From assembly GCA_964270895.1 (NCBI GenBank), contig OZ185439.1: DNA of 64,000 bases, one strand, 5' to 3'. Positions 1 to 37,840 of this stretch are shown one piece after another. This stretch comes from Podarcis filfolensis (Eukaryota). Under the pieces are notes generated by a model. It was not told the origin of the DNA. It saw only the letters and a program-made list of their open reading frames with translations, and did no database searches. Position 1 is the stretch's first letter. Every line of letters starts with the position of its first letter. Made by a program: the position numbers and the translations under genes.

Positions 1-452
1 TATTACTGACCCAGCAGTAGTATTCCAAGGTTTCAGGCTGTGGTCTTTCCCAACCCTACCTTGAGATGTTGGGGACTGAACCTAGAATCTTTTTGCATGC
101 AAAGTGTGTGCACGCTAGCACTCAGCCACAGCCCATGACGTAACCCCTACACTGCATTTCCCAGCAGCTTATCCTGAAACTCTTCACACATTGCCAAATG
201 AGAAACATGATACGAAAGGGGAAGGTTTTCAAAAGCTGAGCCTTTCACTCACTAATCTATGCATCCTTGGAGTCTCAAAGAAAACTTATCTTCAAAAAAA
301 CCTGCTTGGTGTCTTCTCTCGCAGCCCCTCAGCCGCGTGAAGAAGAGGAACATGGGCTACCCACATATTGCTCCCACATCCAAGAGAGGTTCCCACCTTA
401 CTTGGCCTCTCCCTGGATTAACTGGCTCCCCCTGTGCCCTCATCCTTCTTAC

Positions 453-559
453 CCAGGGCGGAAGTTCCGTTCCTGCCCACCTCCAAACAGCATGGGATGG
501 AGAGGAGTGGTGTCACCAGGGCCTCGCACATACAGCGCTCCAATACGTGGGGCATAGAA
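453..559 (-). CDS. SCLY: SCLY exon ([10 protein letters not shown]...QERNFRPG)
   Basis: 107 nt, tgcag|...|gtaaga. Confidence 0.95.
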
Positions 560-3500
560 CTGCAACGATAAATCACAAAGCTAATGCCTCCAGACAAGAA
601 CTAAGAGGTGTGTCCAACAGGAAACTGAGGTACTTTGACCACACAGAAGTAAGGCTGACAAGAGCAGAGAAGCAAACATTAAACCTTGGGGAAATCATGG
701 TTGCCCATGGGAGAGAAATATGGGTGAATCCTATGCTCACTGCTACCCCTCAGTGCTATTTCACACATAACAGAAGAGTTTCCTGTGTTTTCTCCCCCTG
801 TTCTGTGTCACTTGACAGGCATTTGTGTGCTTCAAAAAATACATGACAAACATGTTCCCAGATGCCACAGTTATTTAACTAATTACGCCTGGAGATTAAC
901 TTGAATCATTACTTGGCTACTGGCAAAATAAATAAAAAAATGAAAAGCTGTTTTTGAATACTGTAATGGAAAGTGATGTTGACACACTGGACATCTCCTG
1001 CTGTGTGTCATGCTCTCCTGCGCAATGTGAAAATGTGGACAAATTCACTCAACATTGTTCCCAGATTGCCATCTGGTGGAGAAGCAATTGAGTTGCATTG
1101 CATCCTAAGAAGTGAGTTATCGACTGTCCACTATGTTTTTAGGTGTTCCAAGAGTTCACGATGAAAATAAAAGACAATTTAAACAACACTTTCTGCATTC
1201 CTGTGCAACCATGCTAGATGCATGGGCTGCAGAGAAGAGGGCCAAGATACTGTTCAGGGCAGAGTTTACATTACAGTCACCATATGACAATCTGCATGGC
1301 AGCTGTAGCAAAATACAATTGTCAGCAGCAAGCTAATCAACAATGGTTCTCAATTTAAAAAAAACCTGAGAAACTGCTGCTCTAGCACATGGAATCTCCC
1401 AAAATTCACAAAAGGCCAAAGTGAGATGGCCTCATTGTTTATTCTTTGTGTGTACATATTATGCACTGTTTTTACAAACTTTCAAATGAAAAAAAAAGGT
1501 TTTGGAAACCAGGATGTAGATAGCATTAGACACATTTATTAAACAACATAAGAAAAACACCTTTCGCCCTAATAGAACCAGTCTGCAATCCTGCACAATG
1601 AGAACTGTGAGTGAGAGAACCAATCATGAACACCAAACGTTTTTACTGCCAGCTTCCTGTCATACAAAGCACCTCTGGATTATGGTCACTGTCTGGTTCT
1701 CAGAATGATGGCTGGTGTTCAGGGAGCCCTGGAATGTTCTTTCTTATTTCTCTCTCTAAATGTTTTATCAACAATAAAGGATGACTCTATGGGCTGACAG
1801 CAACTCTCTGCTCAATGGGTATTGGATTTACCATGTTGGGAGATGACCTAGATGAATGGACATCTCTTACCCTGCATGTAAAAACTACATTGTAGACTGA
1901 AGAGAGAAGCACCATACCTTGTGCCCCACAATAGTGAGGTAATCCACTCCCAGATCCTGCACGTCCACTTGACCTTTCCCAATCATCTGTGCTGCATCTG
2001 TGTGTACCAAGATCCGTGGCAGACCAGATGCCGTTCTCTTCCGATTGAGAGCTTGAATCCGTTGGCTGAGTTCGGAGACAGGCTGATAGAAGAAAGCACC
2101 ATCAAGAGGCATCATCTCACCAGGAACACAAGTGTTCTGGCTCTCTCTTTTGCTACTGCCCTACTGGCTGGCATATGATGCCTTCGTGGAATTACTTGCA
2201 TGGAAAGCTGATGGTTGCCTTTGAACTTTTATTGATGATATTATATTGCTTTATTGTTATGTAGTACAACTACCCTGCCTTGGTGATCTAGGTAGAAGAT
2301 AGCATTGGGTGTAACTCAGCATCCAAACAAAGGATACCACATATAAACTCCACAGAACACATAACCCTACACAGGGAGACCATGGTTCACGGCATAGGGC
2401 TATGTCTCTGTGTCTCCAGAGAGCAAAACCTGTAATTTCAAACTAGATTGGGTGAGCAATGAGGTGACAAAAATTGTAGAACTAAAGGTTTTACTATACA
2501 GTAGACCCGTGATTTATGTACATTTAACATGTGCACATTCAGCTTTAGGCACTTGGCAAAAACAAAAAATTAAAAGGGGGGCAGAAAGAGGAGTGGGCAT
2601 CTGGGGGGGGAAACTTCGGCAATCCCACCTGGCGTTGCATCCAGTGTGTTTTGACTATACATGATTTTGGCTTTATGCACTATCCCCAGAACTTAAACAC
2701 CTGTGTAAATTGTGGGGCTTAAAAAGGTAAAGGGACCCCAGACCATTAGGTCCAGTCGTGGCTGACTCTGGGGTTGCAGCGCTCATCTCGCTTTATTGGC
2801 CGAGGGAGCCAGCGTGCAGCTTCCGGGTCATGTGGCCAGCATGACTAAGCTGCTTCTGGCGAACCAGAGCAGCGCACGGAAACACCGTTGACCTTCCCAC
2901 CGGAGCGGTACCTATTTATCTACTTGCACTTTGACGTGCTTTCAAACTGCTAGGTTGGCAGGAGGAGTTGCGGGGCTTACTGTATACTGAGATTGAAAGT
3001 TGGTGGAGTGAAAGGAGAGTGGAAATATTTTGGGGGAGCATCAGCTCCCTCTCATTGGCCCTTGGGATCATCTGACCACATATATGAACCTCATATCCTT
3101 AAACATGTAATAAGAACTGAAGGCACAACTCACCATGATAACCCCAGTTTCATTATTGGCCAGCATAATGGAAACTAGACATGTAGTTGGACGGATTGCT
3201 GCAACAACTTCATCTACTTCCACCTGTCCTGTCACTTTGGACACGGGTACAAAAGTGGCTTCTGTAAATAAGGATGCAAAAAAAGATGTTGATCCCATAG
3301 CTCAGTGCGTTCATCAGCAGTTACTATGTATCTGGCAGCAGTGGAGAAAGTCACAGGGAATAGCAGACCTATTGCTAGGCAACAGGCAAGCGCTCCTTAG
3401 TCTTGAAAGATTAAGATATGGCTGTCATAAGGGAATTTGGGAGGAAGTGGCTATTGACTTAGAAGCAGCATTTAATGAAAGAGGCAGCTGAACAAAAATG

Positions 3501-6337
3501 GATTTTCCTGGAGCACAGCTGGATACTTGGAAGATAAGAGAGGAGGAAGCTGAGGGGAAATGCTGCATGCTGTTTAAGTCTCTTCAGTTTGCAAAAGCCC
3601 CCACAAAGAGCTCTGAGTCTCATACTGAGTTCTGCCATGATCCTGCCCAATTGGAGAAGCACCAGAGATTAAACCTAGCACCGTTTGAACACAAGCTATA
3701 TATTCCTCCCTCCCTACGCAGTGATAAGACCACTTATCAGCCAGATTAGGAATGCCATCTCTGACTCCATGTGTTGGTCACTTTTTGACAGGCGAGAAGG
3801 ATAGGATAGGATAGGAAAGGAAAGGATAGGATACCATAGGAAAGGATAGGAAAAGGAAAAGGAAATGATGCAAATAAATGAATTTGAATTAAAGGTTCAG
3901 AACTGCCCCCAATTCTGGACATTAGCACCACAGTGAAAGTACTGCTGAGCCAGCTTTAGACAGCTCACATTCGGAGTAAGCAATAAAGAGACAGTATACC
4001 CAAAACCCCCTTCATGGATCACTGCCTTGTCGTGGCGAGGGGCTTGAATAACTCCAAGAAGCTCTGAGCTATGCCATGCAGGGCCACCCAAGACAGACAG
4101 GTCATAGCCAAGAGTTTAGACTCAATGTGATCCACCTGGAGAAGGAACTGGCAATCCACTCCAGTATTTTGCCAAGAAAACACCATGGACATAAAAAAGG
4201 AGAAGCTTTGAGAAGAAAGTGAGAGTTTCCAAGGCATGCTCTGGTTCATGGGGTCACAGAGAGTCGAACACGACTAAGATGACTAAACAACAATACCATA
4301 AAAAGTAGTATTTGCTACTCAGAAACTAAAATTGCTAAAAAAAGACCTTTTGCCTAAGCAGAATCTGGCAAGTGCGTATAATTTATCAGCAATCTCTGAC
4401 TATCCGCTACAGTATACTCACCAGCCTCACGCTCTTTCACTAGGTGTTCCACAGGGAGACGGACTGAGTCATGCTCAATGCAAGATGTAATTAAATGTGG
4501 GCACATCCCCAGAGTCTTTTGTTTATCTTCTCTTGGTCCATCAGAACTTTGCTTGTTGCTTTCCTTAAAATGCTTCACTACAGTGTGGATCACTAAATTG
4601 TTTGCCTGAATGGAAAAAGGAGGGATACAAATCCCAATCTCATATGTTCATATGAATATCCAGATTTACCAGTGCAGTCCTCTGGAGTAGACAATGCTGA
4701 ATTTCTTACCCAAAAACTAGTTCAGTGCCAGACTTGTCTTTCAGTCTCAGAAGGATCAGAGGCAGAGGACTGATTTGTAGTCATTACCTCCATGTGAGTG
4801 AATCAAATTGCAATACATGCTCCTTCGCAGGTTTTAAATAAAAGATAGAGCCATTCAACAGAAGCGGGATAGACTTTCTTTTTATCTGATGGGTGTTTGC
4901 TGGGTCTTACTTGGCACTAATTAAGAATGGAGTCACCAATGCTATGAGAAGCAAATAAAGTCAGACTCCATTTAGGAAAAAAGACAGCTAGCATGTTATG
5001 GGTTGATCTCTTAAATGACTGCCAGGTCAAAACAGTGCTAGCAGCATCTCATATCTCACCTCTGTCCCACCAGAAGTGAAGATGATGTCCTGGGGTCGTC
5101 CCCCTACCATTCTAGCCAGACTTTCACGGGCTCCATCTATAATATTTTTAGCCCTTCGACCTGTGAAATCAAAGGCACATTTATCTTATTATCAAGGCAA
5201 GCTGGGAGGAAGTCTCCAAAGGGTGGCATTAGGGGAAGACTGCCGCCTTGAGTTCCAGGATGTAATAAAGTGACAAATAAACAAATTATTAAGTCCACCC
5301 AAATTCTGGAAGAGTTTAATTGTTTTGATACAGAATAATTATTTCTGGTAACAAGAAGTGCCAGATTTGGCTCTGTGTTCTTTGCATGAGCATTTATTTC
5401 AGCGAGTGCTAGACAGTGGATCACATGCAGTAATACATTCCTTTAAGGCCATTTCAATGCAGTAACTTGAATTTAAAAAGGCAAGATGAATATAAAAATG
5501 AGATGGATGCTTTCATATAATGTTTCCATCCAGGCTTGCTCTCACCTTCTGTGTAAGAGCTGCTCGGATTGCCCCATGCTTCATGCATGGCTTCTGTAAC
5601 TGTCTCAATCACCTCTGGAGCCAGAGGGGTGGTTGCATTGCAATCTAGGTATATCTTCCTGAAGGGAACAGAATGCAAGAATAGTTACAACAGAAAAGGG
5701 AATAAGATACATTCACACTAGCACTCTTTGGGCCAAAGTTGCATCGTTGGTTATGAAAAATGCTGCCCTAACCAAACCACTTCTGAAGTCGTCATTGCCA
5801 CAACCACAAAGATGATACTGGGGCTTTGAAATAAAACATCACTATCTCTCCCCAAGCTTTAAAATGTGGTGCCAGTTTTGATGACTACATCATATGGCAC
5901 ACTCACATGAATGTGACAGAGTGGGCCCAGGCCCATGAAAGCATATGCCACAATGCATTTGCTAATCTTTAAAGTGATTTTGCTGAAAATCACAGCATTC
6001 TAGCACTTAAGAAGTTGGCTACTATAATAATCTTTCAGTTCCTAGAGCTCAATCCTAAGATTTTTTTACTTGCTTGGAGTTTTGCAATCCAATCTACACA
6101 CATTTACTTGGAAGTAAGTTCCACTTAATTCAACAGGACTCATTCCCAAGGTATATTGTGGGTAAAATAGCAAAATGTCAGCACTTACCATTGTAAAAAA
6201 ATTGTCTCCATTTTTTTAAAATCAAGGGAAGCTACAAACCTGTTTGATGAGTTGTTCTCTTCCCCATCAAAGTCAATTTTCTCTCTGTTCTCATTTCCTT
6301 TGTTCACTAATACTTTCTTCATTTGGTTCTCTTCCAT
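453..6337 (-). CDS. SCLY: Selenocysteine lyase, 5' part (7 coding exons; gene continues off the left edge)
   Basis: Exons 6240-6337, 5546-5658, 5060-5160, 4422-4605, 3134-3261, 1918-2082 and 453-559 all have AG/GT boundaries and consistent phases. They encode NifS/PLP motifs [44 protein letters not shown] and [11 protein letters not shown], matching vertebrate SCLY. Confidence 0.96.
1918..2082 (-). CDS. SCLY: SCLY exon (PVSELS...HTDAAQ...IVGHK, PLP lysine)
   Basis: 165 nt, atcag|...|gtatgg. Confidence 0.95.
2722..2963 (-). mobile_element. Sauria SINE, 5'-truncated
   Basis: (ACCTTT)n-type tail reads aaaggtaaaggg on +; body matches the four other copies in the window. Confidence 0.85.
3134..3261 (-). 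CDS. SCLY: SCLY exon (ATFVPVSK...NNETGVIM)
   Basis: 128 nt, tacag|...|gtgagt. Confidence 0.95.
3799..3863. repeat. (GGATA/GGAAA)n pentanucleotide microsatellite
   Basis: Directly visible tandem pentamers. Confidence 0.9.
4011..4293 (+). mobile_element. RTE-BovB-derived internally deleted fragment
   Basis: catggatcactgccttgtcgtggcgagggg...agggccacccaagac resembles the BovB 5' region and is joined to catggggtcacagagagtcgaacacgact, resembling the BovB 3' tail (recalled similarity). Confidence 0.75.
4422..4605 (-). CDS. SCLY: SCLY exon (ANNLVIH...[18 protein letters not shown])
   Basis: 184 nt, ttcag|...|gtgagt. Confidence 0.95.
5060..5160 (-). CDS. SCLY: SCLY exon (RAKNII...FTSGGTE)
   Basis: 101 nt, cacag|...|gtgaga. 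Confidence 0.95.
5546..5658 (-). CDS. SCLY: SCLY exon ([11 protein letters not shown]...SSSYTEG)
   Basis: 113 nt, cttcag|...|gtgaga. Confidence 0.95.
6240..6337 (-). CDS. SCLY: SCLY first coding exon (MEENQMKK...NSSNR)
   Basis: Acceptor opens the exon at 6348, ATG at 6337, phase-2 donor joins in frame to RKIYLDCN. The N-terminus is divergent, so this exon is assigned by phase. Confidence 0.7.
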
Positions 6338-7464
6338 TCTCCACCAACCTATTTTAAGAAAAACACAACCCACTTTGTTCCATGAAACATTAGACTTCAA
6401 ATAGCACGCAAATAAATTATGACATGCCTTTGCCCATTAATCAAAAGGACACCACTACTCGTTCTGCTGCATCTTCAGGAATCAGAGGCACTGACTTGAG
6501 CCCCAGATTGGAGGGGCCCAGCATTGCACGCAAGCGCAACGTGACATCATGACATCACACGTGTGAGGCCAATGGGTATGCAATGAAGCCCAACACCACT
6601 GCCCCCTGCTTGCAACTGCAGACCAGAATGCCACCACCCGTGCACTGCCTTACCTCCACTGGCTCTCCACAGCCACTGCAGCAGCTATGCCAAGGTCTCT
6701 TCTGCAAGGCCTCCAGCGGAGGTTAGGCGGCAGGCGGCAGCGGTTTGAGGTGGTCCAGCTGCATTTGTAGGCAGGATGGTGGTGGTGGGAGGAGCCCAAG
6801 GACTAGATACACATCATTGGGAGGCTTCCTCCACTCCCTCAACATGGGGGGGGGGCTTGGCCTGCCTACAAATATTGAGGGGGTCCAATCCTATAGAGAT
6901 GGCACCTATGTCAAGAATATTGCATTACCATTCTGTAGAGGTACTTCCAAAGATGGACATAAGAAAGTTAGAAGAAATATTTCCCATCTCTCAGATTCCC
7001 TGTCTTCCTAGGACTGATATGCTATCCTCCCTGGTTTCCAGCTGGGAGGCAGTCAAAGGAAGAGTCACACACATTGTCAAAAGATTTGTATATGGGAGAT
7101 ATATTTTAGGACTGACAGTGGCTCTCCAGAATCCCCCCCCCCCAAATCCTACCTGGAAATGCCAGAGACTGAAAGTGAATCTGGACCTTTTGCATACAAA
7201 GCATGTGCTTTACACTACCAAGCTACAACTCTTCCTCAAAGGTGAATTGCCTAATGTCCCCAAGGAAGCTCATAGTAGAGGGGAAAATAGTATCATTGTT
7301 TATTAAATTTCTATACCGCCCTTCATCCAGAGGGTGGTTGACAATATAAAAACACAAAAATACATACCATACATACCATAATAGCAAACAAAAACAATAC
7401 TCCCCACAGTTTAAAAACCCATAGAAAGCCAAAAATTCTAATTTGTAGTTCAATCTGCAGTGAT

Positions 7465-7947
7465 TGAAGCCTTAGATTAGCAGTACCCGGAGGTCCAGCG
7501 GTCCGCCAACCCCGTGGCCAGAGGGGAAAAACAATTCCAGAGACTTCTTGGTCAGAGAAAAGAGATTTATTGAGATCTGCGCAGAGGCAGCCAGTGGAGT
7601 CCTCTCCAAAGACTGGCTACAACGATACAAGTAAACAAGCATTTTTATACCTGAGAGTCTGCCCATCTCTTCCCACCTCTTCAAATTCTCCAATCAGCTG
7701 GCAAGGTTAAGCTTATTTCCTTATATGGCATATGGCTAGCTAAGCCCCCCTCCTTCCCTTGTTTGTGTGTTCCTCTCTTGCGTTACTGCAGCAAAGAGCA
7801 TGTGCAGAGCGCAGCTCCTGGTTTGCAGAGCGCAAGTAATTGCAAAGAGGAAGTAGCTCACAGCTTGCAATTGCGGTTTTTGCTAGCTGCTTAACCACAA
7901 AAGCAGAAGTTAGCTTAGGTGCAGATAGTATTGAGATTAACCCTTCA
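7465..7947 (-). repeat. ERV 3' LTR
   Basis: Minus-strand TATAAAAA (7642-7649) and AATAAA (7566-7571); preceded by the PPT AAAAGAAGAGGAGGGAAT. Confidence 0.95.
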
Positions 7948-7989
7948 ATTCCCTCCTCTTCTTTTGGACAACCTATCTCCTAGGTTCGT

Positions 7990-8760
7990 CCTGGTCTCTT
8001 GGGTTTATAATCCTGGGGAAGAACAATAAGGGCCATGATATTTTTATTTTTTTTGCATCACACCTTGTAAGCATTGCACCAAGCAGGGTATACAGAGGCA
8101 AAGAAGCAAAAGGATTAATAGCGGCCTTGCTAATAATACCACAATATGCCTGAGCCAACTGCCATGAGGCAGCCAGAAATATAACCAACCCCATAGATCA
8201 CCTCCTGTAGTTTTCAGCGGGTTCCTGGCTATCATTGTTTCCATGTGATCAATGGTGGCTGAAATGCTGACATTATTATCTGGGACATATCTATTTTATC
8301 GCTGAAGGGCCCACTGATACTCGTGCTCCATCAGCTGCCTTGCTTCTTGGGAGGTTGTGTCCCACCTCTCTAAGGAGGAGCCTATTATCTTAACCAATTT
8401 TCCCACCTGTCCTTGTGGATGCTTAATACTCTCATGATTTCTCCCCAACACACTGTATCCGAAAGGGGCTTCTCCCTCTACATATATTAACATATACCCA
8501 CAGGAATATATCCACCCTTGCAGAGGCCTGACACACGGAGTGACCATATCAAAGAGTTCTGGCCCCAATATCAAAAGTCCTGGCGGTGCCTCAGAATTTG
8601 CTGGGAAAAAAAAGTCTCTACGTTGGGGACGCTGCCCGCGGGCATCCCTCCCATCCACTTGTCCAGCAGGGCGGTTGTCTGGCGCTCTTCTGGAGATGGT
8701 TAGCTTCAGAGGATCATCAGGATTTGGTGTAACTGTCCAATCTAAAATAGCCTTCTTCAC
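7990..8760 (-). pseudogene. env: ERV integrase C-terminus and env remnant
   Basis: Short ORFs ending in a hydrophobic TM-like stretch (HIVVLLARPLLILLLLCLCIPCLVQCL) just before the PPT. Confidence 0.6.
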
Positions 8761-8779
8761 TTAAGTGTGGTGGACCCAA

Positions 8780-11249
8780 GGGGTGAGGTCAGCAACTTTA
8801 ACAGCAGTGGGCCTGGGTCCACCTGTTAAGACAGAGAGAAAATCTCGGGAGAATTACTGCACATAATTATTAAACTGCACATTTTGACTAGCATGGGGGG
8901 GTTATTGCAAAACTGAGTGGACAAAGGCTGGTCCATTGTCAGATCCTATTGACCTAGGTAGTCCATAACGGGGAATGATCTTCTATAACAGGCAGCTGGT
9001 TACCTCGGACGCCCCCTCAGTTCTGGTAGGCCAGGCTTCAACCCATCCTGTATACGTGCAGACCACCACAAGCAGGTAGCGGTATAGTCCACAGTGGGGC
9101 AATTCAGTGAAATCCACAACAAGGTCTTCCATGGGTGCAGTTCCAATATGCTGGATCCCCGGGGGAGCCAAGGGTCCGGTTCTGGGATTATTCTTTTGAC
9201 ATAGCGGGCACTTCCTGGAAATCTGGGCTGCCAGTTGATAAAGGTGGGCTATGTAGAAGCACTGCTTCAGCTGTCTGGTTGCGGCATCTGGTCCCATGTG
9301 GGTGGACTCATGGTATCTCTGAGTAATCTGCCGAGAAAGGGACTCTGGGATCCATATTCTGTCATCATGAGTAAGGTACCATCCTTCTTTGGACATGGTC
9401 AGCCCCTGGGCATCTGCAGTGCCCCTCTCCTTTTGGTGTATATTGGCTTATCAGCGGTGTTCAAGATCCTTCCAGGGACCAGTGCTCCAATAACTGACGC
9501 TGGGGGCTGGTTCCCGGGCTGCTTCCTTGGCCACTCTGTCTGCTAGTCGGTTTCCTCTGGCCACTTCTCCTGGTCCAGTTTTGTGTCCATAACAGTGTGC
9601 CACTGCTACTGCCTCAGGTTCTCATACGGCATCCAGAAGGTTCAATAAGGCTTGTGGGTGGGCCACCTGGTTTCCTCTGGAGGTAAGCAAACCTCTTTCC
9701 TTCCATAAGGCTCCATGGGCATGTAAAGTCAGAAAGGCATACTTAGAATCAGTATAAATGTTTATCTTCTGTCCCTTTACTAGGGTCAGGGCTCTGGTGA
9801 ACGCTGTTATTTATGCCAGCCGGGCCGACGTTCCAGGCGGGAGTGGCTGCACTTCGATCACTTGGTCTTCCAAGGCTACCACTGCATAGCCTGCTTTTCG
9901 CTGTCCAGCCTTAACAAAGCTGCTTCCATCCACAAACCATGAAGGCCAGTGGGGGTTTGCTTCATCTTTAAGGTCAGGCCTGCTAAAATATTCTTCATCC
10001 ATTACTTCAATGCAATGTGCATCTGCTCCTCACCTTCTCCTACCGGGGACAGGGTAGCTGGGTTGAGGGCGGTGGTGACCTGAAACTTCAAACGCGGATG
10101 CAGCAGTAACATCTGGCACTTTCTCATCTTCGCTTGGGAGAGAAAATAGGTACCCTTCATGTCAAGCAGAGTTGGGACTGCATGCGGGGTCACACAAACA
10201 GTGTCTTGGCCAAAAGTAAATTTGTCTGCTTTGTTCAGTAGGGTGGCTACTGCCACAACTGCTCTCATGCACGGCGGTAAGCCTTGTTCTGTAGGCATCA
10301 GGCGCTCAGATAGGTATGCCACGGGCTGCTGCCAGCTTCCCAATTTTTGGCACAACACTCCCTCTGCTGTTCCCTGGTCCTCATCCACAAACAGGGAGAA
10401 CGGCTTCTCAGGATTTGGGATGCCAAGCGCTGGGGCTTGCTGTAGTGCCCTCTTCAAATCCAGAAGGCTTGCTGTTGTTCTGTGCCCCAAACAAAGGGGT
10501 CTCTCTCAGTTCCTCTGGTTGACTCATGTAGAGGCTTGGCAATGATGCTGTAATTAAATATCCATATCCTACAAAATCCTGCAGACCCCAGAAAGCCACG
10601 GAGTTCTTTGGTTCTGGTATCAGGATAATAGCCTGCTTCCTTTCTTCACTGGTAACAAAGGGGTGTTTCACTGTGATTGGCATTGCCTCAAGATCCTATG
10701 TTGGAGCAGTCGCTCTAGATGCACCCACACTCCTTCAGTCGCCCTTCGTGGGATGGGATACTTATTTACTGCAACAGGATTGACAAATGGCTTGGGCTTC
10801 ACAATTATTGGTGGGATATTCTTTGCCATTCCTGGGGGGTTACCTTCAGCCCATACCGCGGGGTTCACTTGTTCCAGAATACTGGCGGGGATGGGTCCCT
10901 CCTCTTCTTTTACCACCATCAAGCGCCAATGTTCCCTCAAGGGTACCTCTAGGGAAAACTCTCCTGCTGGCCCTGTGGTCATTGTTACTTCGCCTGTCGG
11001 TTGGAAGGAGATCTGGGCTTGCAACTTTGCCAACAAGTCTCTTCCTAATAATGGAATAGGGCATTCAGGGATATACAAAAGGTTGTGTTACACCACTTGG
11101 CCTCCCAACTTGCAGGTAACTGGCTGCAGAAACGATGCCCACTGGGATTTTCCGGTGGCTCCTATTATGGTAATGGATTCAGGGGTTGGTTTAGCAACGG
11201 GGGTGGGGACGACCGAGTTGGCCGCTCCCGTGTCCTTTCTGTCGGCAGA
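8780..11249 (-). pseudogene. pol: ERV pro-pol remnant (protease C-terminus, partial RT, RNase H, partial integrase)
   Basis: CPIPLLGRDLL, QQAPALGIP, WFVDGSS, H..TH..CPLC, VDFTELP and WVEAWPT motifs. No RT YxDD core was seen, and there are multiple stops and frameshifts. Confidence 0.9.
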
Positions 11250-12395
11250 TGGCGCACTGATTCTGTTCAAGACGGCTTCGCCCTCCTCCCCGGGCACTTC
11301 CTCTTTTCTGAGGGGTGGGTGTGGCTGCCTGTAATGCCATCAGCTTCTTTGTTTTATACTTCTGCTTTTTTCTCTGGGCTTCCTCATCTCTCTGATTGCA
11401 AGTGGTTTGAGCTATTTTCAACATCTATTCCAGCCCATGGCCGATGCACCTCTCATGCTTCTGGATTTTTTTCTTTTGGCGAATATCGGACGCTGCTGAG
11501 CTACAAAGGCAGCCTTTATAATGGGGCGTTGGCAATATCATCTGGGTTCTCCTCAAAGGTAGGGTTCTAATTTCTCCAATTGCACACATCAGCACTTGAA
11601 AAAGGCACATGTTGGACTGTATAAGTGCATGGTGGTGCTTCCCCACCCTGTCCTGGGGGGCTGGTGGGTCATACACTCTGCGTAGAGGCATCATTGCAGT
11701 CCCACCCTTTTTCTGTGCCTTATGGGACTTATGGAGGGACGCCCTGGTTGCTGCTTCTATTCATTTCTTTCGCATAGGGTTGTACATACTGTTGCAATCT
11801 CAATTGTCTGATACTGTGTCCACATTTTTCCTTTCTTTGCTAACTCAATTAGTCCCTTCATAAACTCCTCATCATCCTCTTCCTCTTCGCTCTCTAATTC
11901 ATCAACCTTGGAGGGTTCAGGCTGAGGGCCGGCTCCTCCCTGGTCCTGGGGCCCTGGGCCTGGGGGATTCGCTAGAGGGGCAGCTGGTGGAGCATAGGGT
12001 GGCGGCGGTTTAATGACTTCCCCCTCTTCTCCTTCTTCTCCTTCCGGCTCTGATATCGCCGGGGGCTTTTCTGACTTCCCTGCCGGTCGGACTGCACAAA
12101 TTGTATTTTGTGGGGCGTCGCCTCGGCAGGCTTTCAGCCACGGTGGATTATTTTCTACATTGATTTTCCAGGTAGAAATATAAGGGATCTGGTCTGGGTG
12201 GACGTTCAAGTTATTTTGATATAGTGGGTTGATTAGTTGCAAATTAAAACTGCCCTCCAAGGGCCAATTAGTTCCTTGGGTGGGCCAATCAACATCCTCT
12301 CTCTTCTCAATTTGAACCCAATCATCATGCTTCGTAGCTGCTTTCCAGTTGGTTAAAAAGCATTTCAGAGGACTACGTTAGCTTGCCCCAGACCC
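11250..12395 (-). pseudogene. gag: ERV gag remnant
   Basis: Matrix motif HPDQIPYISTW, PPPY late domain, deleted and frameshifted capsid, truncated nucleocapsid knuckle QCAICRQKGH. Confidence 0.85.
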
Positions 12396-12929
12396 CCTTT
12401 TTTTTTTTTTTTTCAGATACTCCGCTCCTAACCGGGCTTAAGATCCTTTCACACACCAACCACTACAGGCTGTGACTTAGCGAACTCGCGTTGCTAAGAA
12501 ATGCACAGCCCTGCAATCGCTCGGCCAAGGGGACGCTAAGCCCCGGCCCACACTTGACAATTCAACCACTGGAGTATCTGGCACACAACACACAAAACAC
12601 AAATCCCTTCCCCTTCCCCTGTTTGTCCTCCTTCCGGCGTCAGCCTGCTGACAGCCAGACCCTTTCCTGGCGGCACTTTACTGCTCACTGCCAGGCGAAG
12701 CTGATCGGGCTTCGTCCCTTGCCCTTCCCTTAGGGCTTACCTGCTCCGCTGCGGACTCCTTCGGCCGTCCTCTTTTCTCCCTCGACCGGGTGTCTCCACT
12801 CCGGAGCGGTGTGGCCGGCTCCCCCCACGAACAGGCAGGGGTGCGCACTTGGAGCCGCAAACGCCGGTCCGGGGCTGTTCACCCGGTCGAGTCTGGCCCC
12901 TCGGTCCACCTTTCGTGGGGTGGGGACCC

Positions 12930-12949
12930 ATCCCGGACACGAGCCCCCA
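12930..12949 (-). other. Primer-binding site, tRNA-Pro-like
   Basis: TGGGGGCTCGTGTCCGGGAT versus the MLV Pro PBS TGGGGGCTCGTCCGGGAT (2-nt insertion). Confidence 0.8.
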
Positions 12950-12951
12950 AA

Positions 12952-13434
12952 TGAAGCCTTAGATTAGCAGTACCCGGAGGTCCAGCGGTCCGCCAACCCC
13001 GTGGCCAGAGGGGAAAAACAATTCCAGAGACTTCTTGGTCAGAGAAAAGAGATTTATTGAGATCTGCGCAGAGGCAGCCAGTGGAGTCCTCTCCAAAGAC
13101 TGGCTACAACGATACAAGTAAACAAGCATTTTTATACCTGAGAGTCTGCCCATCTCTTCCCACCTCTTCAAATTCTCCAATCAGCTGGCAAGGTTAAGCT
13201 TATTTCCTTATATGGCATATGGCTAGCTAAGCCCCCCTCCTTCCCTTGTTTGTGTGTTCCTCTCTTGCGTTACTGCAGCAAAGAGCATGTGCAGAGCGCA
13301 GCTCCTGGTTTGCAGAGCGCAAGTAATTGCAAAGAGGAAGTAGCTCACAGCTTGCAATTGCGGTTTTTGCTAGCTGCTTAACCACAAAAGCAGAAGTTAG
13401 CTTAGGTGCAGATAGTATTGAGATTAACCCTTCA
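12952..13434 (-). repeat. ERV 5' LTR
   Basis: Identical by eye to 7465-7947; followed on the minus strand by the PBS. Confidence 0.95.
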
Positions 13435-13799
13435 TGATGGTAGTTATTCCGTTACAATTTTCACCTGCTACTCCATTTTCTCTCACAGGCTCAATGCATA
13501 GGCACTGTTTATGGGCAAAGACCTGCTTCTAGCATAAAATTTTGTTGTGTAGCTAATCACTCAACAATGGAGGGTTGTTGAGTGGAATGGGAGAGCCTCA
13601 CACTATATGAAAGACCCTTAGATGTCTTGCAGTCCTATCCACAGTTGTTATCGTTCCTCTCCGTTTGTAATTATCATTGCTTTGTTTTTGCACTGAAACC
13701 CCGCCCTTTCCATTAGGATTTTAGCACAACCTTCTAATCCCAATGGCCTACTGTAATTAACCCTAAATACATGTACCTGAAATAACTGCTTATCTAAGC

Positions 13800-14250: not shown

Positions 14251-15500
14251 CTATTGGCTACTACGGCATAATTTCAGCTACGAACCAATCCGCGTCCTCC
14301 AACTCACCAGGTAGCTATTGGCTGCTGAGGCTGCTTAACACTCCAGCCACCGACAAATCAGATCCGCGCCACACAATTCGGACTGACAGTGGCAAGGCGG
14401 GTTGACGCGTAGTAGACGCAGGAGCCGGGGCATCCGCTGACTCTCTCTTCCCACTCTCACTATCATTAGTAATATGACGACAGTCTCCCGAAAGAGGGCA
14501 TTGGTCTATGGTCGAGTCTGGTACTGGTGTGGCTTCAGCTTCCGCCCAAGAAAGGCTATTAGTTTAATCGCGACCAGGCGGGTCGCCTCCTCAAGGACCA
14601 ATCAGCTTCCTCCTCCGCCAGTGCGTAATGGCGCTCAGCAAGGCACGGCTGCGTTAGTTAACCAATCGGTTGCCTCGCACTGACGATAACCTGCCTCCGA
14701 CCTTCCCCTTAAGAAGCAAGACCCCTTCGTCCATTTGCCTTGGCTTCGCTTACTGGTTCTGCTCACCTGACGGTAGTTGGCGACTGGGTCTTTTTTTTTT
14801 TTGCCGTCGTCGTTACTTGTTCGTCTATTTTTTCCCACAAGGAGGCCTCACAGGCCCGGTTTTCGCCTCAGCTGCAAAAACGGGACCATATATTAGCTAC
14901 CAACGCCCAGTTTATTTTTTCAAAGCAACTCGGTGAATGACAGTTGAGATCATAGAGACGTCGGCATGAGAGACCACCACAGGGGAAGGGTTGCTCGCGC
15001 TGCCCTTCCTCAAGATGGCGGCGGCGGCACCGCTTTCCCTTTTCCCGCTGCGTAGGGCTCGCTCGCTCGCTCGCTCTCACCAAGATGGCGAAGGATGGGC
15101 CGCGGGCTTTTAATTGACGCTTTACCTGTTCTGGCTGGTTCTGCTGATCGAAGGCAGGTCTTGGGGATAACGGGATAGGCGGGATTAGAGCCGGCCAGGC
15201 CGGGCTATTCAACGGTTGGCCGGCCGGGCAGGGGAAACGGCGCCTGGGCCTCAGGCGGCTTCGGCCTGGGAGTGGGGAGGAACTTGCCGGGGCTGAGAGG
15301 GAGGGCGGCAGGGCCCCACCCCCATCCGCCTCATGGCGCCTGTGGCGGCTTTCGCCTCATTGGCGTTATTTTCCAGGCAGGAATAAGTGCTGGCAACTGC
15401 CGTACGTGGAGTGCCTGGTCCCTGCCTTGCAGACGGGTAGTGGGGCGCGCAGGTGTTCTCTGGTGCTCTTGACAGCCCCGTGGTTTGAGGCGGTGCAGGG
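14150..15500. promoter_or_regulatory. CpG-rich, probably bidirectional promoter (SCLY / transposase-like ORF)
   Basis: High CpG density, at least six CCAAT/ATTGG boxes between ~14250 and ~14670, YY1 motifs CAAGATGGCG at ~15010 and ~15080, TGACG half-sites. Confidence 0.8.
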
Positions 15501-16731
15501 TTGGTCCGCTTGACAGGTTTTAGAAAGATCCCTTCCTTCTCGGTGGGCTGTTTTAATCCCCCCTGTTGACCTCCAGAACGTGATCCCCGGACGCTATGCT
15601 CTCAAGCCTCTTTGGTTTACTGCACTACCTGCGCTCATAGTTTCCAGGACCTAGAGCGGACTTGCATAAATCCCGTGATTGCATCGCCTTAAAGATCCAA
15701 GTTTTGAGCCCTTCAGTTGAGAATTTGCTTACAGTTTGAAAATAGGAAATTGCTTGAATGCTAAAACTTGGAAGCATCATTGTATATATGCTGACAGGTG
15801 CTATTTGTATTTATTTGCCTGTTTCCATTCTGGGATTCAGGTTTCCTTTAGAAAATACTGTTCCTTTTCAGATTGCAACACTATGCACATCTGGGAGGAA
15901 ATGCTGTAGTCAACTTGCTTGTGAATATATATGCATGAGGTTTCACTGACAGGAAGATTAATGTAATTATACCAGGGCACTTATTGCAGCAGTCAGCTAT
16001 GAAAAAGCAAGATTGAGGAAAAGGTACAGCTGCTTGGAACTGTTGCAGTGCAATCTGTTAAAGGCTACCTGTGTGACGGGAGAGCAGGCTCGAAATGTTG
16101 TAAATAAATATTTTAAGATTTGAAGGTAATTTGGCCACCATAGATTTCTGAGTTATAATGGACAGAATACAAGTATTAAGACTGCTTGTTGAGGTGATTT
16201 GTAGTTAATTGGAGAAACACCTGTGCCATTGCTAGAAGGCTTTTTGTGAATTTCCTAATAGGGTTTAATAGATGGTATCTAATGTTAATCATGCTCAAAG
16301 GAGACCCACTGAAATCAACGGACAAGTACTCTGGGTCTACCTTGTGTGATATTGCACTATATTTTTAAATATTAAAATATAAGAACATACTGAATTATAT
16401 GTGAATGATTTAGCTGTGCCAGTGACAGATCATGGGGGAAATTCAGACTGCAGCTAACATGAATAAAATACTTTATTGATGCTTTACTGCTTGACAAGTC
16501 AGTTTTGTTTTTCAGATAGGAGCTTACTTAGTCCAAATGGGTGGAACTAAGTAATGCTCTCTCCAGAAATTACTTGTCTATGTTGGCTGCAGTCCTGAAC
16601 ACTTTGACCACCTTGACTTACATATTCTTAGCTTCACATAATTAAGTTTTTATTTTCGTTCTTGTTGCTATTCTATTTCAGCTGTCTATCTCTTTATTTC
16701 AGCTTTTGGTATAAAAAGACACTGGAAAGGA

Positions 16732-17610
16732 ATGATGGCGGCTTTGGATACTAAAGCAAAAGCAAAAAAAACTCTGGGGACAGTTGATTATGTGGAGTCA
16801 TCAGAATTTGCCCAAGGAATTCTGCCTACCAAGAAGGATGTCATTCAAAACATGCTATATCTATTGCACCCAAAAAGGGCTGGGCAAGCCCAGCGATCCA
16901 AAGAAGATGCTGCCCAGTTGCTTGCTGAACTTCTGCAGGAGCACTGGTTGTTTTGCAATTTGTATACCATAGCAACACAAAGCATAAAGAAGCATATTCT
17001 TAAGGTGTATGAGGAATTTTCAAAATTATATCAGTCCAGAAAGCGAAGAAAAAATGAGTTGTTTACACAGAAAGCGGATGATTTCAACAGGAGTTCAGAG
17101 CAGCTTTTTGACATATTTTGTACAGACACAGGTACAAGAGAGAAATTGGAGCAATACAGTGGTGTGAAGATGACTGACATTGAGTGGAAATTTCTTGAAG
17201 ATCAGAGGAGTGAAAGAAAAATGTACTTTGAGGACTTCGTGGACAAGAAACAAATGGAAACAATAGAAAGACGAAGAAAAGTAGAATCACTGGAGCACTT
17301 CAGGAAGATTGCAGAAGAAGAGAAAGATGCATGTAAGCGTAAAGGAATGACTTCCAATAGAGATGAGCAGCCAGTTGAAGATGTCAGCAGTAGGAAGAAA
17401 GATGACCCCTGCCTTGGACGCAGCAAAGGAATTGGGAACTTTTCACATAAGGCAAAAAGAAAGCGCCTATCTTCTGGCTGGATTACTGGGACAGCATCTT
17501 CAACTAGCTATAGCGAGTCAGTTGCACCTGAATGTCAACATATACGTATGAGCATCAGAAAAGTCAGACCAGGGTTCTATGAGACTTTTGACAAATATGA
17601 AAACTGCTAG
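16732..17610 (+). CDS. 292-aa uncharacterised protein resembling the N-terminal domain of a DNA transposase; candidate domesticated gene
   Basis: Uninterrupted ORF preceded by acceptor tctttatttcag| at 16702. Motif order LPT..DVI / AA.LLA..L..HW / I.K.Y.EF..L / LFDIF / FLEDQR..RKM....VD recalls hATm/'cc8K15.2-like' transposase N-termini (from memory). Basic NLS-like clusters RKRRK and KAKRKR. Confidence 0.7.
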   Translation: MMAALDTKAKAKKTLGTVDYVESSEFAQGILPTKKDVIQNMLYLLHPKRAGQAQRSKEDAAQLLAELLQEHWLFCNLYTIATQSIKKHILKVYEEFSKLYQSRKRRKNELFTQKADDFNRSSEQLFDIFCTDTGTREKLEQYSGVKMTDIEWKFLEDQRSERKMYFEDFVDKKQMETIERRRKVESLEHFRKIAEEEKDACKRKGMTSNRDEQPVEDVSSRKKDDPCLGRSKGIGNFSHKAKRKRLSSGWITGTASSTSYSESVAPECQHIRMSIRKVRPGFYETFDKYENC

Positions 17611-20600
17611 CCCAACATTCAAAATCTGTTTCTGTTGAAGTTTTGGGAGGTCTTAATACCCTGACTAATTGGAAGTTGATGTAGATAATTTTGTTGGGCT
17701 CCATTAATGTACAGCGACACCACCAAAGCAATGGCACCAGTAGAAATGGGCTTTTAGCTTACTGAGAAAGTAAGATTTGTTTAGGCCTGTACTGATACTT
17801 TCACAAGATGAAAGTACTGTGTACTAAAAAGCTATAGTGTAGCAAAGGAAGACAGAAAAACCAATGTTTGGATGTTAAAGCAAACCAAATGCACAATAGT
17901 AGGTTATGTTATATAATAACAATTTAACCACTGGAACAGACTTCTTAGGAAGGTGGTGCATTCTCCATTTCATACAGTCTTCATGTTGGGCTGGACACTC
18001 CTAAAAAACATTTTGCTGAAATGTTGTATAGTGGCCCGAAATAGAAGTGTGAGGAGAAAATGCAGACTCTCCTGCAGGAGAGTCATATTATATAACCTGT
18101 TGCCCATTCCAACCTCTGTGTCTCCCAAGACTGGAAGACCATGTACAATTAAAATAAAAAATGGTAACTAGTGAGATGGCAGCTAAAAGGGGAACTTGGT
18201 TGTGGGGCTGTGTGTCACAATGCAGGATCTTTTTGAGACTCACAATAGACTGCTAACTTCCTGCCTGTTAAAACAGTAAGTAAGTAAGCACACCTGAAGG
18301 GAAAACAGTAATTGGCTCAATTATCTAAAAAGTACAGTAGTTGCCTGTAATGCCCACCCCCATACCTTGATAATACTTGTATTATACTTGATAATACTTG
18401 TATGGTCTTAAGAGACTGACCATATACAATTTGCCATTACTTCATTGAGACTTGAAGGGGTTCTGCGCCTTTCAGGACTAGGTGCTTGCAGGCAAAAGAA
18501 AATAGGTTTCCTCTGTTTGATCTTGCAGATATTTAGTTCCTAAAATACCTATACAGTTCTGAAAAGCAGCTTTTGAATAGATAGCATTGGCTCATGTGAG
18601 AAGAAAAAAAAAAGGGTCAGGAAATTTTAAAAATGGCTTTTGGTATAAATGTGGTGGTAACAACTATTTGTATATTTTCTGCATTCTTAGCAATTAAATA
18701 TCAGTGGTGAGAAATATATGTGGAAAAGTAGAATTTGTAATTGAAAATATTTGAGACATAAACATGTATAATGCACTGAACAGCATGGGGTTGGAACTGC
18801 CTTATGAATTATTTTAAAGGTGTTTAATTCTTCTTTTCCTTGAGTAAGGATTGCAAATGAATGCACTGCAATGTTTGCTACAGTGGAAGGACGTAGCTGC
18901 ACTGCAGTTATAATGAAACAGAAGCAAGTCCTTCCATCTTGAGAAATGTGTAGCTCTGCCTGCAGTGAGCATTGGTAGTACAGATTGCAGCCCTTTCAAA
19001 GCTAGGCAAAACTTCTGTTTTCCTCACTGGTTTTCCCCCAGCATACAGATGGCTAGTTTTCACAGTCTCAGATCCAAACATATTGTATGTATGATGGTCT
19101 GTGCATGTACTGTTACATTACATGACCTCTGGATCACATGGTGTATACACAGACATCCACATATGGAATTGCTGTAATCTTATCTCTGGAAAGTCACAAA
19201 CACCCGGCAACACACCCATACCCATGTTTCCCATCATGTTGGGAAGAGTATATTCCTCAGTACACTGCCCCATTGGCTGTATAGTAGTTAAATCCTAGAA
19301 ATCATGGGGTATTGGGAATGGTTTACAGATATATGTACATCACTTGATCTATCACCACCTAATGGTTCTTGGCTGAAGGTGTGAACTGTGCACCAAAATG
19401 CTGTGTGTTGGAATTAACGTTGGGCGATATAACTGGCCTGTTAAAGTTACCATAATATTCTTCTAAATTTTGCTCACATAATTTCCATAAATACAAGTAC
19501 TTCAGAATATTAAATGGTTACTTTTAGGCAAAGGGCACCTGTCTAGCCCAAAATCCTAATAACAAATTGCCATCATTCTGTTACCCTTTGCCAGAAATGG
19601 TTTTATTTCAACTGTTGCCTTTTTTCATATGGACCAAAAATGTAACTTTATGCAGCATTATATGCACGTTGTGTCAAGCTAAGGAACAATGATTTATTAC
19701 TACATCTGCCCTTGCTTATACATTTGATTTCCCATATGGGAAGTAGCCCCGCTCTAAAACCATGTCAAAAAGGCTGACTGGAGAGACGATTAATGCAATT
19801 AATTGTAATGTAATTGGGTGATGTGCATTATGTCAGTAATGCAAACAGTTTCACTGGATCTTTGAAGCAATAAAAGCACCCTTTTTTCGGGAAAACAAGT
19901 GAGCCATCACTAATGGTAGTGACAGTGCTTCCATTAAAATTTGTCTCCTTTAAAGTTTTTAGATGGATATTTCCAAATGTTTGCATTCAATAGTCATAGT
20001 TAATTTTGAAGTTGTGTTTCCATTCCCAGTCAAGATAAGTTAACCAAATGCCTATAATTATCATCCCTCATTGGTCCTAATATTAAATACCTCCCCAAAT
20101 TGCAATATATTTTCTGCACAGGCAAATTTTGAACCTTCGAATGAAGGAAATTGTCAGAATGAGATTCAGTCACTCTGAGTTTAATGTTTTAGGGATCAAA
20201 AATCTTTTTTGTTCCCTGGAAGGGGTAATTCAAATGATATATGTTCTGTAGCATACATACAAATGCCTCGCTCCATACATTGCAAAAAAGCAGCTAATTT
20301 TTCTTTTTCCATGTGTTCGTATTGATTGGTTAGGTTCATTTAAAACTCAAAGTAATGGGGGGGGGGGGGGAATATATGATTTAGTAGTAAGCGTGTGATT
20401 GTCGCATTACTGCTGAATTAATCCTACTTTTTTATTTTATTTTAAAAAGTACCAATAATCAGGCCCAGCGCTAAAGGTTTCTGGAATTTGTTGATGGCAG
20501 GCCGGCCAAAAGATCGTGTTGATTTTCTTGATAGACTGGTCATGTTCAAAAGAAGCAGCAAAAGAGAAAGTGTTGATTGTTTTTGCTTCTGAAAATTTTG

Positions 20601-24642: not shown

Positions 24643-37840
<13,198 letters not shown>

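Follow-up and report, generated by a model that had tools for sequence, protein, structure and literature searches.

What kind of gene is represented by the long open reading frame (ORF) that lies between SCLY-like and AIRE-like exons in the lizard Podarcis filfolensis? In the 64-kb stretch of DNA analysed here (the window), an intact ORF of 292 amino acids occupies nucleotides 16732-17610 of the plus strand, as reported in a preliminary description, which proposed a domesticated transposase gene situated head-to-head with SCLY and upstream of AIRE. Other transposable elements are present near the gene in the window. Both of the proposed neighbours were placed by tblastx:

444..5673, minus strand: SCLY-like (Aminotran_5) exons, head-to-head with the gene (tblastx with the ostrich Aminotran_5 gene)
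24670..37840, plus strand: AIRE-like HSR/PHD exons, downstream (tblastx with the ostrich HSR+PHD gene)

Within the downstream gene, the PHD exon at 32562-32687 matched PHD1 of human AIRE best (7e-22, 78.7 bits, versus 50 bits for SP140). This AIRE-like gene begins about 6 kb past the 3′ end of the transcript described below, and the promoter of that transcript is paired with the SCLY side.

Transcript structure was derived from RNA of one species and a close relative. A single splice joint, from 15151 to 16701 with two ambiguous bases, was found in three RNA runs (16, 22 and 42 reads) and in one transcript contig, which covers 15051-15151, then jumps to 16701 and ends at 18774. Allowing for the ambiguous bases, the intron runs from 15154 to 16702 and exon 2 opens at 16703, exactly the splice acceptor that had been read from the DNA 29 nt ahead of the ATG, and the anticipated junction between this site and an exon near 15 kb is thereby present in RNA. 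RNA depth was zero over 15400-16600, inside the intron. Expression was modest, at about 12-48x depth using 12% of each RNA run. In a Smart-seq3-type run, 41 tagged 5′ ends marked a plus-strand TSS at ∼15079 and six marked an opposite-strand TSS at ∼15016, while some exon 1 reads begin further upstream, from ∼14600. A CpG/YY1/CCAAT promoter had been suggested about 1.7 kb upstream of the ORF, and its motifs were located around these tagged ends. The spliced, plus-strand transcript has two exons:

14590..15100, no strand assigned: bidirectional CpG-rich promoter (sequence reading, GC 0.525, tagged ends on both strands)
14598-14602 and 14662-14666: CCAAT boxes, in a 52% GC block of the promoter
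15012-15022 and 15082-15090: YY1-like motifs, AAGATGGCG, beside the TSS ends at 15079
15079..15153, plus strand: exon 1, non-coding 5′ UTR (read depth, 5′ tags, splice joint)
15154..16702, plus strand: intron of 1549 nt with GC..AG ends (RNA joint, zero depth)
16703..18774, plus strand: exon 2, comprising 29 nt of 5′ UTR, the whole CDS and ∼1.0-1.2 kb of 3′ UTR, its 3′ end being approximate, between 18612 and 18774 (stranded read depth, transcript contig)
16732..17610, plus strand: CDS, 292 aa and stop (one orthologue per sauropsid species)

The acceptor is kept 29-33 nt ahead of the ATG in six species. An alligator Logan contig (L006) was colinear with the genome and therefore uninformative on splicing.

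Since bidirectional promoters often yield by-product transcripts, and expression here is modest, the ORF could be a non-functional one, open by chance on a long non-coding RNA fired from the SCLY promoter. This is extremely improbable in view of the conservation of the ORF, which is far beyond chance because full-length homologues exist, with 59-92% identity. One orthologue was found in each sauropsid species sampled, including lizards, a gecko, a snake, turtles, an alligator and birds; all are annotated solely as 'uncharacterized protein', and an ORF of 280-292 codons stays open in every one of them. Values of dN/dS ranged from 0.075 to 0.20 (Nei-Gojobori, all pairs with unsaturated dS) with bootstrap 97.5% bounds of at most 0.28, indicating purifying selection, and dS reached 0.34-2.6 while dN remained at 0.04-0.26. 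These ratios refute an ORF left open by chance, as does the DNA directly past its stop codon, where, in contrast to the ORF, many stops have accumulated.

The orthologues are also syntenic. In five of the five genomes fetched (Sceloporus, Anolis, Gopherus, Struthio and Alligator), as in the window, the gene stands head-to-head with an Aminotran_5 gene, and the sauropsid sequences form one clade (100/100 support) with a topology that mirrors the species tree. Relatives of the gene elsewhere are mobile elements with terminal inverted repeats (TIRs) and target-site duplications (TSDs), and the transposable elements nearby in the window would likewise suit a young transposon copy, still or recently mobile, with an ORF intact by chance. 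Such a copy has next to no probability, however, being refuted by synteny, a common truncation and purifying selection: locus and stop codon do not differ among six genomes that span the sauropsids, the gene tree and dN/dS are those given above, and the whole catalytic domain is missing. When the flanks of the lizard gene were searched, no TIRs and no TAGGGGG-type ends were found, nor was a catalytic-domain relic found downstream of it within the window, in agreement with the preliminary description on both points. A single word-based search among proteins of similar length gave no counterpart in mammals or amphibians. No description of the gene was found in literature on the gene itself (as LOC424740, the name under which the chicken orthologue appears in the snake entry), on the chicken SCLY/AIRE region or on domesticated sauropsid hAT genes, and it seems not to have been described before.

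The encoded protein was divided into four parts by alignment and by an AF2 model:

16759..17211, plus strand: conserved N-terminal domain, residues 10-160 (conservation, AF2, dN/dS 0.02-0.16)
17236..17349, plus strand: long single helix with RRRK, residues 169-206, a coiled-coil candidate (AF2 secondary structure)
17350..17517, plus strand: disordered, acidic, Ser-rich linker with the NLS-like KRKR, residues 207-262 (pLDDT ∼31-45)
17518..17607, plus strand: conserved basic tail, ECQHIRMSIRKVRPGFYET.., residues 263-292 (alignment; dN/dS 0.03-0.15)

The AF2 model is of moderate quality, with a mean pLDDT of 60; residues 10-135 alone are well modelled (pLDDT 75-92). It predicts a β-hairpin followed by a helical bundle for residues 10-160, a domain in which H71, W72, C75 and C130 are invariant in the alignment. 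H71, C75 and C130, together with H270, are candidate metal ligands. The linker is the fastest-evolving part, with dN/dS of 0.25-0.47 in most pairs, and the tail corresponds to the start of the segment lying ahead of the RNase H core in the transposase. With a pI of 9.15 and several K/R clusters, the protein as a whole is basic; basic clusters, noted previously as NLS-like, were found at residues 103 (RKRRK), 180 (RRRK) and 242 (KRKR). The 292-aa protein had no match in Pfam, in a PDB sequence search or in an ESM Atlas feature search, and no solved fold was matched by the retained domain in Foldseek/PDB and exhaustive VIA searches on the AF2 model. The best VIA matches, to TetR and E2F-type helical domains, were rejected as noise (top Z 5.0).

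The origin of the gene was sought among its longer relatives. It shares 35-57% identity with the N-terminal part of long invertebrate and fish proteins, which in the alignment read on past the position of the sauropsid stop into a domain of ∼650 aa, the full-length transposases being about 940 aa. Whether other taxa keep a longer ORF with the catalytic domain had been posed as a question, and a model of the long form indeed takes up a Hermes-like fold. All of its top 10 Foldseek matches were to Hermes (prob 0.95-0.99), and VIA aligned 329 residues with Hermes at Z 11.0 and rmsd 6.5, compared with 8.2 for the next-best, ISCth4, 7-8 for integrases and ∼6 for RAG1/Transib. In both Hermes and the long relatives an RNase H-fold DDE core is broken by a large, all-α insertion, as in the hAT type, with model residues 142-585 lying on Hermes 148-609. 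The motif order read by eye in the long relatives is D173/174, D243, C270-x2-H273, E549, a D..D..CxxH..E order and spacing that we take to be similar to those of Hermes. At the sequence level the parent family stands apart from Hermes: a family profile did not reach Hermes among PDB sequences, 20 long members gave no match in Pfam, including the hAT dimerisation domain PF05699, and a BED finger is lacking.

Long ORFs were located within elements of 4052 bp in a limpet and 4066 bp in amphioxus, each bounded by TAGGGGG... inverted repeats and flanked by a 7-bp target-site duplication (CCTATAT and CTTAAAG, respectively). TIRs of hAT elements follow the YARNG rule, and the ends of these two, TAGGGGGTGG and TAGGGGGGGG, start with TAGGG and are consistent with it. 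The target-site duplication of hAT elements is usually 8 bp, rather than the 7 bp found in both elements examined, a length that also differs from Hermes. The modelled fold and the motifs read by eye support a hAT-like transposase as the parent. The preliminary description had likened the motif spacing of the protein to that of the N-terminal region of hATm transposases. By published description, hATm elements end in 5′-TAGGGTG...CACCCTA-3′ with TIRs of several hundred bp, and carry 8-9 bp TSDs and the PF05699 dimerisation domain (Zhang et al. 2018, PMC6004678). The likeness to hATm is partial: the elements found here begin with similar, not identical, sequences and the inverted ends of the limpet copy extend for ∼320 bp, but the TSDs are 7 bp long and PF05699 was undetected.

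The point at which sauropsid and long proteins diverge records how the gene arose. The stop falls at the same codon in all sauropsid orthologues, and in Gopherus and Alligator the DNA directly after it resembles the transposase continuation, in frame and riddled with stops. The presence of this relic in a turtle and an alligator shows that the gene descends from the long form, and as a molecular fossil the relic preserves the truncation event with unusual clarity. It also bears on whether the gene might be an ordinary, ancient metazoan host gene, the long forms being either host genes themselves or transposons with a captured host domain. The N-terminal domain is distributed from sponges to chordates and no Pfam transposase model matches the members examined, as such a history would allow, but it is nonetheless very improbable. 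In addition to the relic, the long form combines its Hermes-like fold with TIRs and TSDs in two phyla; several long copies exist per invertebrate genome, in a family of at least 2,905 representative clusters (50% identity); and the transposon-like rows of the tree depart from phylogeny, with toadfish and mantis shrimp as sisters. A host gene unrelated to transposons was rejected on these grounds.

The domesticated transposase proposed from the outset is thus supported by orthology, synteny, selection, RNA and the longer relatives. The gene is very probably a host gene derived from the front third of a hAT-like transposase, encoding a protein for which a nuclear, DNA-binding or oligomerising role is proposed. 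According to this scheme, a hAT-like DNA transposon would have landed next to the SCLY promoter no later than in the most recent common ancestor of living reptiles and birds. The results show that the ends of the element were lost and that a stop codon cut the transposase just ahead of the catalytic RNase H core, the downstream part decaying and the first ∼290 codons being kept under purifying selection ever since. The present gene consists of a non-coding exon, fired from a bidirectional CpG/YY1-type promoter that it has in common with the SCLY side, followed by one coding exon. What was retained would be the only pre-catalytic module of the transposase, that is, the domain of residues 10-160, the helix of residues 169-206, the KRKR cluster and the basic tail.

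What this module does can be approached through its anatomy, from which a nuclear protein that binds DNA or oligomerises seems the likeliest. It may bind DNA in the way that the transposon ends were presumably bound by the module, and may oligomerise through the long helix; at first it could have been kept to compete with, or repress, the parent transposon without catalytic activity of its own, and afterwards as a regulator. Since neither Pfam nor PDB sequences nor known folds match the retained domain, DNA binding is suggested by where this domain lies in the transposase. The same lack of a recognisable DNA-binding fold would fit a domesticated module that acts instead by protein-protein contacts, its helix and tail serving, for example, in a scaffold or a dominant-negative partner. 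In the fold search the helix of residues 169-206 matched nothing but generic coiled coils, and in the full-length model the conserved tail comes from the segment ahead of the RNase H core, both of which are compatible with such contacts. Against them stand the basic character and the K/R clusters of the protein. In hAT-type transposases such as Hermes the N-terminal region binds the transposon ends, which by analogy also argues against a purely protein-contact role, and we regard this role as a tentative alternative. With respect to DNA binding itself, a narrower and still rather doubtful proposal is that the N-terminal ∼150 residues form an unrecognised sequence-specific DNA-binding fold and that the gene is a transcription or chromatin factor specific to reptiles and birds. 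If so, it would represent a regulator class lacking in mammals, within a conserved SCLY/AIRE block, and the domain would have served a very large, unannotated hAT-like family for binding its own ends.

New regulators are known to have arisen by transposase domestication, among them ZBED proteins, CGGBP1 and RAG1. Truncated transposases are also known from transposons themselves, as in the P-element KP and 66-kDa repressors, which are young and transposon-encoded. Like these repressors, the sauropsid gene keeps the N-terminal part of a transposase without its catalytic activity, which offers a plausible first selective advantage; unlike them it belongs to the host, is fixed and syntenic, and dates back to crown sauropsids. 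Hermes differs in its catalytic part, none of which is kept by the sauropsid gene. Among host genes the closest comparison is with the CGG-binding proteins, including CGGBP1, which are described as having been domesticated independently from hAT transposons (Yellan et al. 2021, PMC8097297, as cited in PMC11575156). CGGBP1, a nuclear protein, is similarly short, conserved in amniotes and drawn from the non-catalytic front of a hAT-type transposase, without the catalytic core. CGGBP1 is present in mammals and has a BED-type zinc finger, whereas the lizard gene lacks a BED finger or any Pfam domain, was recovered from reptiles and birds alone, and stems from a different, unannotated transposase family.

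A gene as old as crown sauropsids whose orthologues are all named 'uncharacterized protein' is noteworthy, as are a source transposase family not covered by Pfam and a retained domain without a known fold. Chicken and lizard biology gain a concrete, testable lineage-specific gene, and the large hAT-like family behind it merits classification. An Atlas fold search with the 292-aa protein returned unnamed arthropod clusters only, and these probably belong to the same family.

The reading frame at 16732-17610 of the plus strand is intact and encodes 292 aa. It belongs to a real, expressed, strongly constrained transposase-derived gene whose age is that of crown sauropsids; the exapted-transposase reading of the preliminary description is supported by synteny, descent, dN/dS, a truncation relic and Hermes-like long relatives. 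Transcription was followed in three read sets, two from stranded bulk RNA and one from single cells, and in one assembled transcript contig. Reads and contig contain a single joint within 14400-20399, from 15151 to 16701 with two ambiguous bases; only an intron spanning 15154-16702, its ends being GC..AG, gives this joint a proper acceptor. The splice junction predicted from the DNA is thereby borne out, 16703 being where the coding exon starts and not the ATG. The donor is GC, not GT; GC..AG introns are a rare splice-site class. RNA depth is zero across 15400-16600 and unbroken from 16703 to about 18.6-18.8 kb, except in two low bins (18200-18399 and 18600-18799). First mates of the stranded runs map to the minus strand, as plus-strand RNA does in most stranded libraries, so the RNA is assigned to the plus strand. 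Despite the same species label, the reads show many fixed differences from the window within 14400-18800 (16716, 16779, 16812, 17076, 17133 and 17298 among them), so the runs stem from a different individual or population or from a close relative.

In the single-cell run a template-switch tag (ATTGCGCAATG plus G's) is carried by 41 reads ending at 15079, which we read as the main cap site, and by six reads of opposite orientation ending at 15016. The two start sites thus lie about 63 bp apart, within a block of 52% GC that contains CCAAT boxes and AAGATGGCG motifs, two of each, and that corresponds to the CpG/YY1/CCAAT promoter proposed earlier. This promoter is bidirectional, pairing the gene with a leftward transcription unit on the SCLY side. 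Alternative start sites are suggested by some plus-strand reads that begin well before the main cap site, from about 14600 onwards. Within 14600-15100, each of the two start sites adjoins one AAGATGGCG motif.

The neighbouring genes were located by similarity to ostrich genes.

Neighbouring genes in the window
444-5673, minus strand: SCLY-like (Aminotran_5) exons, similar to an ostrich Aminotran_5 gene
24670-37840, plus strand: AIRE-like HSR/PHD exons, similar to an ostrich HSR/PHD gene

Aminotran_5 is the Pfam family of selenocysteine lyase. For the PHD exon at 32562-32687 the best match is human AIRE PHD1 (7e-22, 78.7 bits), followed by SP140 (50 bits) and SP100 (30 bits), and with the ostrich matches this makes the labels SCLY and AIRE reasonable. 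The next gene downstream of the ostrich orthologue carries HSR and PHD domains, and the order SCLY, 292-aa gene, HSR-PHD gene is common to window and ostrich. In the window the AIRE-like gene is likewise the next one downstream, its first exon about 6 kb past the 3' end of the 292-aa gene's transcript. An ERV-like insertion at 7461-13438 separates the shared promoter (about 15016) from the SCLY-like exons (to 5673) and presumably falls within intron 1 of the SCLY-like gene.

Among 5.8 billion proteins, a word-indexed search restricted to those of similar length returned one orthologous protein per species, every one annotated as 'uncharacterized protein'. Identity to the window protein is 92% in Sceloporus and 89% in Anolis among lizards, 87% in a gecko, 88% in a rattlesnake, 66-70% in turtles, 62% in alligator and 59-66% in many birds. 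An Aminotran_5 gene stands head-to-head with the orthologue in all five fetched loci (Sceloporus, Anolis, Gopherus, Struthio and Alligator) as in the window, so that single-copy syntenic orthologues do exist. The matches included no protein from mammals, amphibians or ordinary fish; because the word search was limited to proteins of similar length, this is only suggestive of the gene's absence from those groups. A literature search turned up no publication describing the sauropsid gene. The acceptor noticed 29 nt upstream of the window ATG is the one used in the RNA joint. Six of six genomes keep a polypyrimidine tract and TTTCAG acceptor at 29-33 nt ahead of the start codon; the two-exon layout is therefore old.

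Selection was estimated by the Nei-Gojobori method from six coding sequences. In all pairs with unsaturated dS, dN/dS is 0.075-0.20, a purifying and not a neutral range, with bootstrap 97.5% bounds at or below 0.28 (window versus Sceloporus: dN 0.036, dS 0.487). Constraint is uneven, dN/dS being 0.02-0.16 over residues 1-190, 0.25-0.47 in most pairs over the linker (residues 191-262) and 0.03-0.15 over residues 263-292. In a maximum-likelihood tree with 14 non-sauropsid relatives, all 19 sauropsid proteins form one clade (support 100/100), in which squamates are followed by turtles and then by alligator plus birds, with palaeognaths basal among birds, as expected if one ancestral gene was inherited vertically.

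The non-sauropsid relatives (starfish, mantis shrimp, amphioxus, limpet, bivalve, octopus, sponge, toadfish and many eukaryotic metagenome contigs) align across all 292 residues and run on past the position at which every sauropsid protein ends (..FYET-V/F-DK-x-x-N-C-stop). When translated in the gene's frame, the sequence 3' of the stop codon of Gopherus and Alligator resembles the transposase continuation, interrupted by many stops, with stretches matching ..IDLDTLP..AGKSIE-x-LAL-x-EIVK.. and ..SE-x-QA-x-A-x-V-x-VGN-x-MFG..

Relics of the transposase continuation in the 3' UTR
L003:10865-11044, turtle locus
L005:10856-11086, alligator locus

The same translation gave a weaker signal in ostrich and none in three lizards; persistence in turtle and alligator fits either the slow substitution of turtles and crocodilians or constraint on the UTR. 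The stop-riddled relic settles the direction of events, the long form being ancestral. The ancestor encoded the long transposase, and a stop was fixed before sauropsids diverged; codons 5' of it were kept under selection and those 3' of it decayed. Neither a further relic of the catalytic core nor TIRs or family-type ends were found around the lizard gene, in agreement with the first reading of the locus.

Longer frames with a catalytic domain were found in other taxa. A second search, seeded with the continuation, returned proteins of up to 814 aa, and an exhaustive profile search (E<=0.001) gave at least 2,905 representative clusters at 50% identity for the parent family, full-length forms of 928-943 aa among them. 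The motifs DDGSKKQG, TDQTAHN, FCNVHP and AERSVG follow one another in the continuation; in the long relative P0067 they supply D173/174, D243, C270/H273 and E549, spaced much like D180, D248, C265/H268 and E572 of Hermes. With the AlphaFold model of P0067 (mean pLDDT 75.5), all ten best Foldseek matches were Hermes chains (probability 0.95-0.99, then a sharp fall to 0.13). VIA-align placed residues 142-585 of the model on Hermes 148-609 (Z 11.0, rmsd 6.5, 329 residues), the runners-up being ISCth4 (8.2), retroviral integrases (7-8) and RAG1/Transib (about 6).

The 292-aa protein has a pI of 9.15 and the NLS-like clusters described for it (RKRRK at 103, RRRK at 180 and KRKR at 242). Its own AlphaFold model has a mean pLDDT of 60 and is good over residues 10-135.

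Parts of the 292-aa protein in the AlphaFold model
To about residue 160: N-terminal beta-hairpin and helical bundle
Residues 169-206: one long helix
Before the tail: disordered acidic, serine-rich linker with KRKR
C-terminal to the linker: conserved basic tail

H71, W72, C75, C130 and H270 are invariant in the alignment of sauropsid and transposon sequences and could form a putative metal site. Searches of Pfam families, PDB sequences and solved folds gave no match for the protein, and an Atlas fold search returned only unnamed arthropod clusters, probably the parent family. In the full-length transposase the retained module is the sole one ahead of the catalytic core, a position that in hAT-type enzymes holds end-binding and oligomerisation functions; a nuclear DNA-binding, oligomerising protein is therefore the best-supported reading. 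Its DNA-binding component is put forward tentatively, and a purely protein-protein role for the module is a somewhat less likely alternative. Such a nuclear DNA-binding protein may first have been retained as a dead competitor of the parent transposon. Transposase domestication is a well-known kind of event, exemplified by the ZBED genes, and the sauropsid gene adds one case. CGGBP1 is likewise a short amniote protein, derived from the N-terminal part of a hAT transposase (PMC11575156).

The long relatives are encoded by mobile elements.

Complete elements of the parent family
L007:8893-12944, limpet: 4052-bp unit whose coding region, about 2.9 kb, has no introns; inverted ends starting TAGGGGGTGGAAT and about 320 bp long; flanked by the 7-bp direct duplication CCTATAT
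L009:4820-8885, amphioxus: 4066-bp unit with TAGGGGGGGG ends and the 7-bp duplication CTTAAAG

A toadfish copy has one family-type end and an internal deletion. The parent element resembles hAT elements in its hAT-like mode and Hermes-like fold, but each of the two elements examined has a duplication of 7 bp, against the usual 8 bp, and Pfam hAT models matched none of 20 long members scanned. Published hATm elements have TAGGGTG...CACCCTA termini, TIRs of several hundred bp, 8-9 bp duplications and a PF05699 domain (PMC6004678). Compared with that description, the parent family, with TAGGGGG ends, is close in termini and TIR length and differs in its 7-bp duplications and in lacking a detected PF05699, so that the earlier label hATm holds in part and 'hAT-like, possibly near hATm' is preferred. 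Being very large, with no Pfam model matching and 7-bp duplications in both complete elements, the family may deserve its own classification.

Placement of the transposon-like proteins in the tree departs from phylogeny, toadfish and mantis shrimp being sisters on short branches. Toadfish P0068 (L008:6001-7698) groups with mantis-shrimp P0044 (98/91) and is 82% identical to amphioxus P0050 over the catalytic part, a pattern that suggests horizontal transfer between marine animals. The starfish protein P0013 (Asterias rubens, 405 aa) consists of two tandem N-terminal domains only, without the catalytic part; its halves are each other's nearest relatives in the tree, and either an independent domestication or an artefact of annotation could explain it.
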